DNA from: Pocillopora damicornis
Lineage: Eukaryota
Length of the DNA: 63,900 nt
Assembly (NCBI RefSeq): GCF_003704095.1
Contig: NW_020846357.1
Span: forward strand, 124,101-188,000
Direction: 5' to 3'
The position numbers were made by a program, and so were the translations under genes. This document shows positions 15,861-25,465 of this stretch, piece after piece (position 1 is the first letter of the stretch; each line of letters begins with the position of its first letter). The notes under the pieces were generated by a model. The model was given only the letters and a program-made list of their open reading frames with translations. It was not told the DNA's origin and made no database searches.

Positions 15861-18800
15861 TTAGAGCTTGGATTTCATCGCTCCCATCATCTTTTCAAAT
15901 TTCATTGCCATCATCATGTCTCCCTTAATTTTCAGTTTTCCTCCCATGAACGCCTGAGTTGGATTCATCTGACCCTTAAACATCTTAACAAAATCGTCCG
16001 AGCCTAGGGTCATTGTACAGTTTGCTTTACCTCCTGGATAAGATCCTTTACCAGCAGATCCTGTGGATAAATGATAAAAGTAGCATTTACCTCGTAACCA
16101 GGGTCTCTCTTTCAATCCCTCGCTTGCTCCGGTGAGAGATCCTGGAGACGAGGTTAACGATGTCTGAACCTTGCCGTGGAATAAGCAAGATAACAAATAA
16201 AGGAACAGTAAAGAACAGTATTGATCTTTCCATAGATACATTAAGATTACCGAGGAAAATAATGGGACCCTTAAAAAAAAGGGCAAAAAAAGTAAGAACA
16301 AGAGTTAGAGAGGATTTCATGTTTTTTTCGAATTAAAACAAAATCAAGCGCGTCGAAAAGAACGTAGAATTCTGACATGAATACGGAAGAAATTTGCTTC
16401 ACTTCCGCAAACTAGGGGCGTTGAATGTTTTCTCCGAGAAAAATAGCGTTTTCTGAAGAGCAGCATGATCAAACAAATATGGGGAGAAGACCAATATGGC
16501 GTGACGTTCCCGGCGAGCCCCTCGATATTTGCATTCGCACGAAAAGTGCCTTCCTCATAAAATATCACATATTATTGTCCGAACTTTGGTCGAACCATCT
16601 TTTCTTCAGGGTTGTTTACCTGCATCATTTTGGAGATCAATATACCACACTCCTTCGTCTTTTCCTGTTAAATGAAACTCGAACACTCCCCTCACTTCAT
16701 TAACAAGTTGTTTGTTACATAAGCTCTTTATGATATCGAAAATTCCATCCACTCCTTCCGCACTATTTCCTTGTGGAACAGTATCTGCGGTCTTCTGAGC
16801 CTCCATAACTTTTTTAGCATCCGAACCATCAACGTCCAAGAAGAAGTCCGGTAACAGTTTGCTTCCTGTAAATGTGATGAAAGGAGGGTAATAGTCACAC
16901 AAGCAAGACTAGGGTGTATTGCGTGACACGATATAAAAAGAAATCGTCTACCTATGAACCTCAAGTCGCATGACGATTTCAAAACGACTTTACGGCCGAT
17001 TTTTCCCTATCTTTTAGCTTATGGCTGCCTTACTCTATCTTTGTCTTCCCTTCAAATCAAATAAGTGGGTTACTTTCCACTATTGTATTAAGAACACAAA
17101 GCATCAAACCAATTAGTCAGTAAACATGGTTCAGGAAAATTCTTCAAAGTAAACATCCCTCCTTTCTTTACGTTTATCTTTCCCACTACCCAACCTAAAT
17201 CCAGTAACCCTGTCATCTCAACTACTCTTACCTGGCACACAGGCATAAGGTTCAAAATCTGTGACTCCCACTTCTATGAGTACATCTTCATCAACAAGAA
17301 ACTCTCCAGTCCTGGCTCGACTATCCCTTGTTAGGACAACATAGGCAGCATCAGCCATGATCTGATCAGTGCGACAGGAAGCAAGAGCTTCTTTACCACC
17401 CAGCATCTCCATAGCAGCTGTAGCTATAGCTAATGAATCAAGGGAATACTTCTTTAAGCAGAAGAACATACAGTATAACAAAAAATAAATTCTGAAATAA
17501 AAATACAACTTTCAGAAAGCAATGAAATGAGTGTTATGTTTTGTTACACTGTAGTTACTGTATGTCATGATGGCTCTGAAAGCCTCTCTTGAGAAATAAT
17601 TTTTAATGAAAAATTGATCAAGTTAGGTTTGTAGTTTTGTGTTTACCTGTTTTAGGCCACAGTGCATTAACTGAAATCCCATCATCCTTGAATTCTTGTG
17701 CCATGCCCAGGACACACATGGACATGCCATATTTAGCCATTGTATAAGCTTAGAACAAAACAGATAGCAGCTAAGGAATCAAAATGAAAAATCACCAAAT
17801 TCCACAAGCACTAAATATATCAATTTAATCTAAACAAATAAAATTATTACAGGTCTAAATTTTTTTTCCTGATTTTTTTCAGGCCTTATTTTCACTACTG
17901 CTCAAGTAATGTTTATTACTGCAAAGATCAGTTTCATATTCACAAAATTATTTATGTCCAATGAAAAATTAATTCCTTATGGTAGAGTTCAGCCCAAAAG
18001 GTATATGTTAAAAGGTTAGTTACAATTATTGGCACATATCTTGTTAAAAGATAAAGCACCTGGTAAATTGCTTGTACTTTTTAGAAGTATGTTATTACTT
18101 GTTACTTGCTGTTTTATTTTGTTCAACCAACACCAACCATCAGATTACTAAAGACTGCATCAGTCAAGACATTTGTCTCCACCTGTATTACAAAGTGTCT
18201 GTTCTCATGACACTTGTCGTGAGTGTAAGATGGAAGTTTTTCTAGGTCTGAGTTTACAATGAGTACCCACAGAAGAGGGGTAACCACCAAGATTTCAAAC
18301 CACAGTTTGTTAACTCTGGTTCAAATTCCTTTTTGAATGAAGGTATAAGAAACAAGTCAGATCTGACCACAGTGATCATCATCTGGATGGTGTTCCAAAA
18401 TATAATTAGGCAAGAAAGTCTCTCTAATTCAATTTATTACAAAGTTGGTGTGCTGTGTAAAAGTGTAAGCAACTTGATAGTGGGAGATAAATTGTGAACT
18501 AACCTACATGACCTTTGAACCAATGAGGATTCATGTTCAGAGGGGGACTGATGTTTAAGATGTGTGAATTCTTTCCAATCTTTAGATATGGTAGACAGGC
18601 TTGAGAGCTGTCAACACATTCCAAATGATAAAAAATTAAAGGTGTAATCGGATAATAATAACAAGTATTGGAACATATTTACAAGGTGTCTAAGCTCTAA
18701 GAAAATAAAATAACCCATGACATTGGAAATAACTGTTCCAATTCAAAACTTGTAGATATATGTATCAATATCTCTATGTATATACAAAAAAGCAGATAAG

Positions 18801-20428
18801 CTCAAAGGTAAAGACACACTGGTAAATTTCAAAAAGAAAAGAAATAAAGGAATGTAATTACCACATTTATTCATGATATATGACATTGAATATTGAATGA
18901 AGTTTTACTTCAGAACCTTTCATGACTTAAAAGAATTTGGAAATGCTCAGAGGTAGAATCAAAAATATTATAAATTGAAATGAATTTTTCTTCTATTCTA
19001 ATTTCTGAACAAAGAAATTTTAAATTTGAGTCAACTTTAAAAAAATTTAACCAACAAATTGTAAAATATACAACAATAGATGGAAGTATGTTCAATAACC
19101 ATGAAAGTTGATATATGCTAACTGGAGAGACTCACCACAGATATGTCCCCCGTGCATTAATGCTGTTCATAAGATCATACCTGTAGAAAGGTGTGATAAA
19201 CATTTCATAAAAATAAATATTTTTCCTCCAAATGATTTTAAGATTGATTTTCATAATAATACTTCTTTGTTACCAAAAAATTTTACTGAGAGTAGAGGTA
19301 GTATTATTCATTCCTTGGGTTTGGAAATTGGAACCACTCATGACAGACTCTAAAAAGTTTAAACACAAAAACTTGGCTCTTACTTGGTGTATAAGACACC
19401 ATAGAATTCCATCACAACTGGGAACAAGAAAACAATGAAAACAATAGTGTGATTTAAACTGTGTCTTCTATACCAAGTAAGAGCCAAAAAGTTCAACACC
19501 TTAAAACCATAGTCTACAGCGGCAAAGGGCGTAAGATGGCCATGAGCTGACCATAAAATCCATTTATTTTATGAAGCAGTAATATCTTTCATGCTCCAAT
19601 GCTTTTTTAAAAATAAAAGATGCTCTCACTTTTTCATTGGTGTTTCCAAAGTCCCTGTCAAGCTTATTGCACTAGCATTGTTAACAAGTATGTCAATACC
19701 ACCAAATGTCTTTACAGCTTCTTGTACTGCACTATTGACCGCATTTTCATCACGAATATCCACTGCACAGGGAAGGCACTTTCCTCCTGCCTCTTCGACT
19801 GTAATTAAATACATCAACACAATAACTGTTACACCAGTTGGCTTGGGTCGTTGCCCAGTGGGGGAGGAGAGGGGATGGGGGGGGGCTTAGGGTGTTGTTA
19901 ACAATTCAGTTGTTGCTTGATTTGAAGATCCAAACTTAAAGATAATTTTACCTTTTGAAGCTTAAAGAGGAGAAAATACAATCAAAAAAGGTAAAACCTG
20001 AGCCAAGCCGTTCACAAATTACTACCAGGGGCTGCATGTAGTGTGGCAAATATGCCTGCATCCTCACTTCTGTGCGTTTCAAACAATGCCTTCGAGGCAC
20101 GCGAACCCCCATGTGTAAATGAACAAGGCAAATATATTTGACTTTACCTTCTTTTGCTGCAGTGTATATCGTTCCAGGCAGTTTTGGATGAGGTTCGGTA
20201 GTTTTAGCGGCGATTACAATGTTTGCTCCATCTTTGGCCGCTTTCAGCGCAATGGCTTTTCCAATTCCACGGCTGGCACCGGTAATAAATATAGTTTTAC
20301 CGGCTAGTTTCCTAAAGGGAAATCGATTTTAAAGATACTTTGGTTATAAAACAGAAACTTTAGCTGATTTTCCTAAAGAGTTGGAAGAAAGACTGAAAAT
20401 AGACAAAACTCTACCCTGTGTTCAACAT
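15861..20428 (-). CDS. HSDL2: Hydroxysteroid dehydrogenase-like protein 2, copy A; 9 exons: 20428-20415, 20311-20148, 19798-19630, 19180-19136, 18607-18504, 17748-17647, 17429-17232, 16865-16620, 16060-15861
   Basis: SDR motifs [29 protein letters not shown] and YTMAK, followed by a C-terminal SCP2 sterol-binding domain (PTQAFMGGKLKIKGD) and a terminal PTS1 -SKL. Confidence 0.95.
16088..16154. mobile_element. Short MITE-like element in the last intron of HSDL2-A
   Basis: Imperfect terminal inverted repeats acctcgtaaccagggtctctc / gagagatcctggagacgaggt. Confidence 0.6.
18129..18394 (-). ncRNA. Composite box C/D-H/ACA scaRNA, U85 (SCARNA10)-like, in HSDL2-A intron 5
   Basis: Sense strand shows a terminal stem (10/11 bp), box C ATGATGA (18382-18376) and box D CTGA (18143-18140) preceded by the guide TCTTTAGTAA, complementary to U5 loop I UUACUAAAGA. 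An internal hairpin has pocket strands AATCTT/GTAAA followed by an H box AGAAAA. A second hairpin has a TGAG (CAB) loop followed by ACA. Confidence 0.88.
19373..19487. mobile_element. MITE-like element in HSDL2-A intron 3
   Basis: ~27-bp inverted repeats ttggctcttacttggtgtataagacac / gtgtcttctataccaagtaagagccaa with a ~60-bp spacer. Confidence 0.65.
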
Positions 20429-21439: not shown

Positions 21440-21600
21440 TGTGAACTGTGGTTTAATGAAGAAATGAATGGAAGCAATCTTTGCAGTAATAAACATTACT
21501 TAAGTGGTGGTGAAAATAGGGCATGAAAAAAATTCAAGGCCTGTGCAGGTCGTAGTTCATTCAGTAGTGTTCATCACTGCAAAGATTGCTTTCATTCATT
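21440..21600. repeat. Interspersed repeat with internal inverted arms; a related copy lies at ~17850-17945
   Basis: atgaatggaagcaatctttgcagtaataaacattact and agtagtgttcatcactgcaaagattgctttcattcat are near reverse complements. The same motif (agtaatgtttattactgcaaagatc) occurs in HSDL2-A intron 5. Confidence 0.6.
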
Positions 21601-21849: not shown

Positions 21850-24800
21850 TCATAATTTGGATTTCATCTTTTGTAGGAGCTGATTCTCAAGTTTCATAAA
21901 TTTATGCATGCTTCCTGTAAGCTGGAGTTTTCCTCCCAAATACGCTTGTGCTGGATTAAGTTCGCCAGTGAACAACTTCACAAAATCCTCTGAGTCTAAC
22001 ATTACTGTACTGTTCACCTCATCTCCTGAAAAAGAACCTCTTCCAACCTCACCTATTAATGGAAAACAAAGAATGAGTAAATAAGAATTAGACTGGAAGA
22101 GCAAATTTTTGCTTTTGTTTCTGCTTCCTATAAAACTCAAGGAAATAGATTAAAAAAGGAGTCAGCTTTTATCCAGATCTTGTTGAACCATCAACTCTCA
22201 GTTGTCAGAACTTGTCTGCCTTGTAGGTGATAGGTAATCACCTGTACTAAGGTTTTGTCATTTTGCATAATTTGGTGGTCAGAGAATAAACCCATGAGTT
22301 ACTCTTGTTTGATCATTTAACTAAAGTATCCTTCATTACTCCCTAGTTTTTTTTTTTTTACATCTGTTTGAGAATTTTCTTGTTTGTTTGTAAACTGTCT
22401 CACTCATTCATTTCTTTACTTCCTTTTGTTGGTTTATCACTTCATTCTTTCAACATAACTTGTTAACTCTTATTTTCAAAACTGTTTTTTTTTCAGAAGC
22501 AATTTTTTTGTCACCTGCCCAGTCCCTTCTTTCATTAAACACAATGGAGTAAATTCAAGTGTTTACCTGTACTGCTCTTAAGATCAAGATACCACACTCC
22601 AGCTTCCTTTCCTGTTAAATGAAACTCAAAGACTGCATTCACTTTCTGAACAAGCTTTTCATCCAAAAAATTTTTAACAGCATCAAAAATGTCTACTACC
22701 CCTCTCACTTGACTCCTGTGAGAGGAAGTTTCCCTGGTATCCTTGGAGGAGTTTCTTTGCAGTGTGGGAGAATAACCATCAATAAAACTGTCTGGCACTG
22801 GTGCACCAGCTGTAAAGAGAGTAAGGAATGTTATTGACCAATACTTTTCATAGAATCAACCAATGATGTCATCTGAACAGGATGAAAGTCCATTGTAGCA
22901 CACTCCACCCACCCCTTCTCTTTGTCAGGTTTGACTGACTGTATGCTGATCCCTTTCTATGGTCCTGAGTGGAGAGAGGCTTGCAAAGAGTTCTGACCCA
23001 AAAACACAACACAATGACCCTGAGACTATGACAAAGACCGGTTTATCTGTCATTCAGAGAGCTCACCATGAGGATATGGCTTCTCAAGATATTAACTGCA
23101 CACAAGAGGGAGGTTAAGATTTTAACAGAAATTCATGAGGTTACCTGGAATATAAGAATACTGTTCAAAGTCAGTGATTCCTGCCTCCTTAAGAACATCT
23201 TCATCATAAAGAAACTCTCCTGTCCTTGTTTTACTGTCTCTTGTCAACATGATATATGCAGCATCAGCAAAAAACTTGTCTATTCGACAGTAGGCTAAGC
23301 CTTGTTTCCCTGCAGTAACCATGACAGCAACAGTGGCAATACCTGTTTAATGGAGTAACCTTTAATTTTTTTGGTAGTAATACTCAGGTGTACTGACTTA
23401 CAGCTGTAAGCTAAATATTTTCTTTTGAGGGTACATTTTAATGTGTGCACTTTAACATTTCAGACAAGGAACTGAACAGTAAAATCAGATAATCAAACCT
23501 TTTTTAGGCCACAGTGCATTTACTGCAATCCCATCATCCTTGAATTCTTGAGACATCCCAAGGACACATAATGACATTCCATACTTAGATAATGAATATG
23601 CTATAAAAAATCATTCATGGAGTATCATAACTACAACAAAGATAAATTCAGAAAGAATTTTACAATACAAATAGTAGCCTTAAAATAATTGTGAATAAGT
23701 AATGGTAGATAAAGAAACAAATCATAAAAGAAATATCCATTGTTTGGATAACAAGCCTTCCATCTCATGAGACCAGCCATCAGATTACCTAAGGTAACAT
23801 CAAACAACAGTTGTTGCTGTTCCCACCTGCAACACAAAATGCTGTTCTCCAGACACTTGTGTTAGGTGTGGTGTGGAAGTTTTTTGGGTCTGATGTTAGG
23901 ATGGGTTATCCACAGGAGAGAGTTATCACCAAGATTTCAAAGATTTCAAACCGGGCAATGGATTGAAACCTCTGGTTTAAATTCCTTCTTAAATGAAGGT
24001 GGTTAATTATGTTAGAGCTGACACAGTTTGCACCATATGGCTGAAGATGATACAGTTCAGTTCAATGGTGCAGCTTGCTACCAAAAACAAACAAACCAAC
24101 AAAAATGCTGTCTACTTTTTTAGTCAAACCCAATATTTTTGGAGAAGCAAGAAAGACCTTCAAGCTTAAATATGTCAGCAAAATAAATTAGAAAACACAC
24201 AATTGCAAATTCTTACCAACATGTTCTTTGAACCAGGCATGTCTGATATTTAAAGGTGGTGTCACATTTAAAATGTGAGGATTCTCTGCATTCTTTAAAT
24301 ATGAAATGCATGCTTTGGAACTAACAAAATAAATGCAACAACATTTTTAGAGTTTTTTTCAGCAAAACGTTTTGGCCTTGATGTACATCAAAAGTCAGTG
24401 ACAAGAAAACTGATTTAAATGAAGTGTTTAACTTGTCAATACTTACCACAAGAATGTCCCTCTTACATTGACATTATTCATCAGATCATATCTATAGAGA
24501 GTTGGTTACATAGGATTGGTCACAAGTGGAAAAAAACTAAGAAAAAACTTTCAAAATGGTAGTTAACGAGTGTCCATTCAATAAAAATAGACTACTTTCC
24601 GAGTATCATTAACATGAACTTAAATCTCCAAAAGCTATTTCTCGTAAACCAAAATTTAAGAAAATTTGCGATGGAAATACTTGTAAATTGAACAAGGCCT
24701 CACTTTTTCATTGGTGTTTCCAAAGTCCCTGTCAAGCTTATTGCACTAGCATTGTTAACAAGTATGTCAATCCCACCAAATGTCTTTACAGCCTCTTGTA

Positions 24801-25465
24801 CTGCACTGTTAACGGCGTTTTCATCACGAATATCTACTGCACAGGGAAGGCACTTTCCTCCTGCCTCTTCAACTGCAGCAAGAATCATGAAAACGGCAAT
24901 ATCATGAAAACTTTTTTAAGGGTTTATCAAAAATGATCTTAGAAATCAGCACTGAAATAATGTCACCACGGCTACAGTTCGAGGAAGTAATGCGTATTTT
25001 ATTGAGTACATACAAAATCAAGGAGCCAGACATCTGCAAAATTATGATCGTGACATCTGTTTGTATCACGCCACTTGAAGTCACGCATTTCATTAATTCT
25101 GTCACGATTGTCTCAGATAAAAATTACAGTCTTGCAGCAACAACGAAAAAAAAAGGATCACCTTCTTTTGCTGCAGTGTATATCGTTCCAGGTAGTATTG
25201 GATGAGGTTCGGTGGTTTTAGCGGCGATAACAATGTTTGCTCCATCTTGAGCTGCCTTCAGCGCAATGGCTTTTCCAATGCCACGGCTCGCGCCGGTGAT
25301 AAATAATGTTTTACCAGCTAATTTTCTGCCAAATGTAGGATGAAGACAGTACAGATATCATAATGAACAGAAAAAAAAATCAAAACAGGAAATCGTCCGA
25401 TCTAACGAAGGCAGATTAGCAAGTTTTTTTACGTGGAGCAAAACTTACCCAGTATTCTTCAACAT
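21850..25465 (-). CDS. HSDL2: HSDL2 paralog, copy B; 9 exons: 25465-25449, 25325-25162, 24872-24704, 24491-24447, 24320-24217, 23600-23499, 23342-23145, 22809-22567, 22052-21850
   Basis: Same exon/intron structure as copy A, with [21 protein letters not shown], an SCP2 domain and terminal -SKL. I saw no frame disruptions. Confidence 0.92.
23774..24043 (-). ncRNA. Diverged duplicate of the U85-like scaRNA in HSDL2-B intron 5 (possibly a pseudogene)
   Basis: Colinear similarity to 18129-18394. It retains a terminal stem cagcca/tggctg, box D CTGA and both hairpin scaffolds. Box C is changed to ATGGTGC, the D guide to CCTTAGGTAA, and there is a 9-nt tandem duplication at the pocket. Confidence 0.65.

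Follow-up and report, generated by a model that had tools for sequence, protein, structure and literature searches.

An intron of HSDL2 in the coral Pocillopora damicornis contains a predicted composite guide RNA of the U85/SCARNA10 family

The window analysed here is a stretch of 63,900 nt from the genome of Pocillopora damicornis (NCBI RefSeq assembly GCF_003704095.1, contig NW_020846357.1, positions 124,101 to 188,000), and all coordinates given without a contig or locus name are positions within it. It contains a tandem duplication of an HSDL2-type gene, with copy 1 at 15900-20320 (-) and copy 2 at 21900-25330 (-). An intron of copy 1 holds the subject of this work, a 266-nt element that appears to be a composite box C/D and H/ACA small Cajal-body RNA (scaRNA) related to U85. 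The minus-strand open reading frame pieces flanking the element encode adh_short and SCP2 domains and a C-terminal -SKL, the architecture of HSDL2. The exons on either side of the host intron encode SQACLPYLK... and AYTMAKYGMS..., and the intron is proven to be 755 nt long because contigs from public sequencing runs join 17748 to 18504. An earlier note, made from the sequence of the window, had named HSDL2 as the host gene, which the domains and the -SKL end bear out; the joint was recovered in four runs. Between the 5' splice site and the start of the RNA lie 109 nt, and a further 380 nt separate its end from the 3' splice site (Table 1).

Read on the sense strand of the gene, the element is framed as a box C/D RNA. 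Its terminal stem, AACACCAUCCA/UGGUUGGUGUU, forms 10 of 11 pairs, the remaining position being a U.U. The earlier note had described this stem together with box C and box D, and all three are present at exact coordinates between 18394 and 18129 (-). A complete H/ACA domain (hairpin-H-hairpin-ACA) sits between the internal boxes D' and C' in an RNAalifold consensus of 11 coral sequences. The 5' hairpin of this domain is likewise as had been described, with pocket strands AAUCUU and GUAAA and with box H (AGAAAA) 14 nt from the first base of GUAAA, inside the range of 14-16 nt expected for U85. The only changes among corals in its lower stem, GGUUUGA/UCAGACC, are from U-A to U.G. For the second hairpin the earlier description holds in part: UGAG does lie in the apical loop, but the ACA trinucleotide in AAUACAGG, which had been taken as box ACA, is not conserved (other corals have AAU, AAG, UAG or GAA there) and was rejected in favour of the conserved ACA at 18174-18176. 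The UGAG had been read as a Cajal-body (CAB) box. It is present in the window copy, but across corals only nGAG is conserved, the first base being U in the window copy, A elsewhere among corals, and G for the tandem paralog of the RNA. The loop of the 5' hairpin of the window RNA contains no CAB motif.

Three further structural candidates were considered. A second methylation guide upstream of D' was rejected because the sequence there is not conserved, and a second pseudouridylation pocket, within the 3' hairpin, because most of the internal loop there is paired. In the minimum-free-energy fold of the single sequence (z -2.8), GGUUUGAA forms a helix with UUUGAACC upstream of it, in place of the lower stem of the H/ACA 5' hairpin. 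This alternative helix is nearly invariant, and covariation does not discriminate against it. The H/ACA stem is preferred because both RNAalifold and the Rfam model pick it, and the minimum-free-energy fold was set aside.

Twelve U5 small nuclear RNA genes were found in the same genome by Rfam (81-97 bits), and all six of the copies read carry the loop CGCCUUUUACUAAAGAUUUCCG. In box C/D guides, the nucleotide selected for 2'-O-methylation lies opposite the fifth nucleotide upstream of box D. The D guide, UCUUUAGUAAU-CUGA, forms 10 base pairs with U5 UUACUAAAGA, and the G at the fifth position upstream of box D faces C45. In H/ACA guides, the strands of the pocket flank an unpaired target uridine; the pocket strands of the coral RNA pair with UUUAC and AAGAUU of U5, leaving U46-A47 unpaired. 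The complementarity behind both pairings proposed in the earlier note, the D guide with U5 loop I and the pocket framing U46 (Psi46), is therefore real against the genome's own U5 genes. A review lists U85 as the guide of exactly these two modifications, U5 Cm45 and Psi46 (PMC7960923).

An Rfam scan of the whole window at the gathering threshold returned no match. With E-value reporting, model positions 1-329 of RF01296 (snoU85) align over 18135-18387 with 36.1 bits (E 7e-8), the gathering score of the model being 41 bits. The match is best at box C, over the pocket and the hairpin that holds it, at box H, and along the guide and box D. The covariance-model comparison called for by the earlier note thus gave a two-sided answer: the match is full-length and the sole snoU85 match in the 234-Mb genome (E 6e-6), but the window copy stays under the gathering score. 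Eight of the nine coral homologs tested score 48-58 bits, above that threshold, and the ninth (L028) scores 37.1. The end-to-end alignment, together with coral orthologs that pass the gathering score, upholds the proposed U85 architecture and target pair. Threshold-based annotation would miss the window copy because its score falls just under the Rfam cut-off; since several coral orthologs exceed it, they may already be labelled in the automated annotation of other corals.

Homologs were sought in a metagenome collection with a pattern composed of the pocket 5' strand, a gap, UGUAA, a gap, and the guide with box D, the spacing of which excludes the longer vertebrate form. The scan returned 21 contigs: 14 clear homologs, four members of an AT-rich family discussed below, and three chance matches in unrelated sequence (L008, L020, and L027), about as many as had been estimated beforehand. 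The 14 homologs yielded 10 further distinct sequences, which were aligned beside the window copy (alignment A2, 11 sequences); L010 was excluded because it has an unrelated 5' end instead of box C. At every homolog locus that reaches an exon, the flanking HSDL2 exons lie on the expected sides of the RNA, except at L014, where the downstream exon had no match in the exon comparison. L025 gave no exon match in that comparison and L010 was left out of it. The homologs fall into two paralogous lineages, A and B. The downstream exon of copy 1 in the window is 91-94% identical to that of A loci and 80% identical to that of B loci, with the reverse for copy 2, which indicates that the HSDL2 duplication is older than the divergence of these corals.

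Folding of A2 with RNAalifold gives independent support for the terminal stem, for the 5' hairpin and its pocket, for the hinge, and for the 3' hairpin with ACA directly after it. Compensatory double changes occur at four pairs of columns: 4-279 in the terminal stem (CG to UA), 120-138 in the upper stem of the 5' hairpin (UA to CG), and 169-224 (CG to GC) and 174-219 (CG to UA) in the 3' hairpin. When the structure is written out explicitly, 580 of 650 cells pair, against 202-304 in registers shifted by 1-3 columns, a control that is partly circular in that the structure comes from the same sequences. The aligned sequences represent at least four divergence groups at 73-82% identity. Variable columns make up four of the 52 in boxes and guides and 122 of the 226 elsewhere (p about 1e-10), and all 10 columns of the D guide and all 11 of the two pocket strands are invariant across the coral lineages. 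The conservation and covariation that the earlier note had suggested looking for are therefore found in the same HSDL2 intron of other corals, with four compensatory pairs and near-invariant boxes and guides.

The window RNA is also invariant at a finer scale. Four runs, a near-identical sample of a population or species, show no variants in its 266 nt and 15 (13 substitutions and two indels) in 294 nt of flanking unique intron (p about 6e-5), the nearest lying two bases beyond the terminal stem. The stretch is present in eight RNA-library runs from several studies, and contigs covering it come from the RNA libraries of three studies and from one run of unrecorded type. The expression data consist of assembled contigs, which carry no information on ends, strand or abundance. 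The host intron is transcribed; a 266-nt mature form is predicted. A chance resemblance to U85 is excluded by the single genome-wide snoU85 match (E 6e-6) taken with the conserved orthologs and the variant-free stretch. Together, the sequence data support assignment of the window RNA to a known kind, the composite C/D and H/ACA guides of the U85/SCARNA10 family, and the description of it in the earlier note as a non-bilaterian U85 homolog of about 266 nt agrees with its anatomy, the snoU85 alignment, and the coral orthologs.

We therefore propose that the window encodes a functional intron-encoded composite box C/D and H/ACA scaRNA of this family, a reading to which we assign a probability of roughly 0.88. 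It is based on the anatomy of the RNA, complementarity to the coral's own U5, family homology, intronic position, purifying selection, and the presence in this genome of genes for fibrillarin, dyskerin, and coilin. The mechanism proposed here is drawn from this anatomy and from the established biology of human and Drosophila U85; processing, protein assembly, localisation, and both U5 modifications are all predicted by analogy. The RNA would be freed from the HSDL2 intron after splicing, exonucleases trimming it as far as the ends protected by the terminal stem of the C/D frame. This frame would assemble with fibrillarin, Nop56, Nop58, and Snu13, and the D-box guide would pair with U5 loop I so that C45, opposite the fifth base upstream of box D, becomes 2'-O-methylated. 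The nested H/ACA domain would assemble with dyskerin, Nop10, Nhp2, and Gar1, its 5' hairpin pocket pairing around U46-A47 to convert U46 into pseudouridine. Finally, the nGAG in the 3' apical loop is probably a CAB box recognised by WDR79/TCAB1 for targeting to Cajal bodies. In the telomerase RNAs of cnidarians, CAB boxes are reported to be conserved (PMC8480181).

Several observations weigh against this proposal. The window copy scores under the Rfam gathering score, its 3' hairpin is far shorter than that of the model (15 versus 85 positions), its terminal stem has a U.U where other corals have G-C, and the CAB box is conserved only as nGAG. The RNA-library contigs, mostly from polyA libraries, reach about 5% of exon depth and run into the flanking intron, which is compatible with pre-mRNA, and a literature search found no mapping of U5 modifications in a cnidarian. 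A low score and an imperfect terminal stem are what would be expected of a recently inactivated relic, drifting like the tandem paralog and forming no working ribonucleoprotein. The window copy has the lowest score of the copy-1 orthologs (36.1 bits against 48-58) and is only about 75% identical to other corals, and the paralog next to it is clearly decayed. Even so, all of its boxes and both of its guides are intact, and it has remained free of variants in four runs while the intron around it varies. It is moreover the only intact copy in the genome, and its loss would leave C45 and U46 of U5 without this guide. We consider a relic very unlikely.

Single-function roles have been proposed for some composite scaRNAs, and only one guide function might operate here, with the H/ACA domain serving mainly stability and Cajal-body targeting, or the C/D frame serving processing only. 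In favour of this, no pocket is present in the second hairpin, conservation is lacking upstream of D', and vertebrate U89 is a composite RNA for which only a pseudouridylation target is known to have been assigned. However, the D guide and the pocket strands are all invariant in an RNA in which corals differ at over half of the other positions. This joint invariance would be difficult to account for if either pairing were idle, and we think it very unlikely that only one of them is used. The element might instead be a conserved cis-acting signal for splicing or transcription that resembles a scaRNA by chance, lying as it does in a conserved intron of a conserved gene with transcript evidence that also fits pre-mRNA. 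Such a signal would hardly be expected to align over its whole length with a covariance model based on U85 of bilaterians, to show compensatory changes in its stems, or to match two adjacent U5 positions exactly and in canonical registers, and we give this explanation almost no credence. A working dual guide accordingly remains our preferred interpretation of the window RNA.

U85 is the textbook case of one RNA guiding both kinds of modification, and its human host gene is NCAPD2. In the literature searched it is experimentally documented only for human and Drosophila; the search found no report of U85 in cnidarians, the broad survey of Marz et al. 2011 being outside its coverage. Like human SCARNA10 (U85) and Drosophila U85, the coral RNA is intron-encoded and has its H/ACA domain nested between D' and C', with a D guide selecting U5 C45 and a 5' hairpin pocket selecting U46. 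It differs from them in its length (about 266 nt against a model of 329 positions), in its much shorter 3' hairpin, and in the lack of a CAB motif in its 5' hairpin loop, and from human SCARNA10 also in its host gene, which is HSDL2 rather than NCAPD2. Human SCARNA12 (U89) is likewise a composite C/D and H/ACA RNA predicted to guide U5 Psi46, the site for which both U85 and U89 have been named (PMC2685112). The coral RNA carries both guides and is functionally of the U85 type. We know of no C45 methylation guide assigned to U89. The coral RNA is probably co-orthologous to the vertebrate U85 and U89 genes. In Arabidopsis, snoR103-1 and snoR103-2 guide the equivalent U5 loop pseudouridine but are plain H/ACA RNAs with no C/D frame, and the study that describes them found no composite RNAs in that plant (PMC2685112).

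The clear coral ortholog supports the view, put forward in the earlier note, that the composite design predates the cnidarian-bilaterian split, as judged by sequence comparison. The two modifications themselves, Cm45 and Psi46 in U5 loop I, are probably also older than that split. It follows that the RNA can remain in one host intron, that of HSDL2, across deeply diverged corals and yet reside in a different host gene in vertebrates. Given its predicted localisation, it would also provide coral biology with a concrete marker RNA for Cajal bodies.

The genome holds only two copies of the RNA, the second, upstream one lying in the orthologous intron of HSDL2 copy 2. The RNA is the only intronic segment that can still be aligned between the two HSDL2 copies. 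In the paralog, box C reads AUGGUGC, D' reads CUAA, the pocket 3' strand reads CCUAAC, and the guide reads CCUUAGGUAAU; by these changes it has clearly decayed in this genome. Boxes and guides are retained by the B-lineage copies of other corals, save for ACU in place of ACA in L022 and L023. The duplication amounts to a natural experiment, some corals having retained both copies while in this genome one has decayed.

Several side observations concern the duplicated gene and its coral homologs. Between the HSDL2 copies in the window, the two 5' exons share 90-95% of their DNA sequence (100% in protein for exon B) and the 3' exons only 70-84%, a pattern suggestive of an old duplication whose 5' part has undergone gene conversion. 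At L009, L012, L014, L016, L018, L019, L022, and L024, identity between the scaRNA paralogs of lineages A and B is 91-95%, whereas the flanking exon is only 80% identical (protein). This pattern points to concerted evolution or to a constraint on the RNA much stronger than that on the host exons. In the B-lineage locus L023 (1602-2141, +), the three exons that follow the scaRNA have just about 33 and about 63 nt between them, introns much shorter than those of the window. L010 (1120-1401, +) is the same as L025 from just past box C onwards, its terminal stem and box C being replaced by unrelated sequence; it may be either a chimeric assembly or a truncated copy.

The AT-rich family comes from assembly GCA_016295295.1 and related metagenome contigs (JAEEGK010000914, JAEEGK010005119, Ga0256407_10027968, and JAEEGL014045053). 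It is an intergenic RNA of about 200 nt, 88% identical across four contigs of 18% GC, on which the genes are densely packed and intron-free. Its terminal stem is GGGAA/UUCCC and its box C AUGAUGA. Two hairpins follow, the first with the pocket strands AAUCUU/GUAAA of the coral RNA, and between them lies box H, ACAUAA. After the second hairpin come a box that reads ACA or AUA, the guide CUUUAGUAAU, and box D CUGA. It thus shares with the coral RNA a C/D frame around hairpin-H-hairpin-ACA/AUA, the pocket strands, and the D guide CUUUAGUAAU-CUGA, and differs in being about 200 nt long, intergenic rather than intronic, and outside the snoU85 model, Rfam snoU85 failing to recognise the family. Among the near relatives of a neighbouring kinase, just one is named, and it comes from Paramecium. 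Two neighbouring proteins have relatives that for the most part lie on contigs the size of a gene, and no named match came from fungi, animals or amoebozoans. The organism, for which a protein atlas listed no taxa, is probably a ciliate, an assignment we offer as a lead only. The likeness could mean either that the U85 design is early-eukaryotic and was later lost or split in plants and yeast, or that it has arisen twice. We tentatively raise the possibility, on balance the less probable one, that a composite dual guide for U5 loop I is older than animals. A literature search found no report of composite guides in protists and no paper that mentions assembly GCA_016295295, and the family, if confirmed, would be a more surprising result than the coral ortholog.

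Table 1. Positions of the composite RNA, its parts, the surrounding HSDL2 features, and the AT-rich family. Positions are those of the window unless a locus is named.
Feature	Position	Strand	Remarks
Composite scaRNA, U85/SCARNA10 type (predicted)	18129-18394	-	266 nt; Rfam RF01296 alignment, coral conservation, variant-free in 4 runs
Terminal stem, 5' strand AACACCAUCCA	18384-18394	-	pairs with 18129-18139; recovered by RNAalifold
Box C AUGAUGA	18376-18382	-	UGAUGA invariant in 11 coral sequences
Internal box D' CUGA	18357-18360	-	invariant in coral alignment
5' H/ACA hairpin, lower stem, 5' strand GGUUUGA	18295-18301	-	pairs with UCAGACC, 18245-18251
Pseudouridylation pocket, 5' strand AAUCUU	18289-18294	-	invariant; pairs with U5 A48-U53 (AAGAUU)
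5' hairpin, upper stem and apical loop	18258-18288	-	RNAalifold stem, columns 113-125/134-145
Pseudouridylation pocket, 3' strand GUAAA	18253-18257	-	invariant; pairs with U5 U41-C45 (UUUAC), U46 and A47 left unpaired
Box H AGAAAA	18238-18243	-	most corals AGAAAA or AGAGAA; L019 AGAGUG
3' H/ACA hairpin	18177-18235	-	lower stem UUCCAUC/GGUGGAG, upper stem ACAAGUGUC/GACACUUUGU; RNAalifold
CAB-like box UGAG, 3' hairpin apical loop	18204-18207	-	GAG invariant
Box ACA	18174-18176	-	directly 3' of hairpin stem GGUGGAG; ACU in L022, kept by the other 10 of the 11 sequences aligned
Internal box C' CUGAUGC	18157-18163	-	UGAUG invariant
Methylation guide UCUUUAGUAAU	18144-18154	-	adjoins box D upstream; invariant in corals; pairs with U5 U42-A51
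Box D CUGA	18140-18143	-	invariant
Terminal stem, 3' strand UGGUUGGUGUU	18129-18139	-	RNAalifold; variants start at 18127, outside by two bases
Host intron, HSDL2 copy 1	17749-18503	-	755 nt, GT..AG; spliced joint 17748/18504 in 4 of 4 public runs
Upstream host exon SQACLPYLKIGKNSHILNISPPLNMNPHWFKGHV	18504-18608	-	
Downstream host exon	17647-17748	-	
Decayed tandem paralog	23772-24043	-	orthologous intron of HSDL2 copy 2; 71% identity
Flanking exons of paralog, intact	24218-24319 and 23497-23602	-	HSDL2 copy 2
AT-rich composite RNA	L011:12410-12640	-	
AT-rich composite RNA	L013:3267-3497	-	
AT-rich composite RNA	L015:3460-3690	+	
AT-rich composite RNA	L026:1122-1348	+	

The host intron of the window RNA also contains a short, very high-copy repeat at 17872-17943, an inverted copy of which lies at 21477-21533. 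Dozens of RNA-library contigs, with depths in the thousands, end on the repeat at 17872-17943. It may be a tRNA-derived short interspersed element, as neighbouring loose ends resemble a tRNA T-arm (GGUUCAAAUCC).

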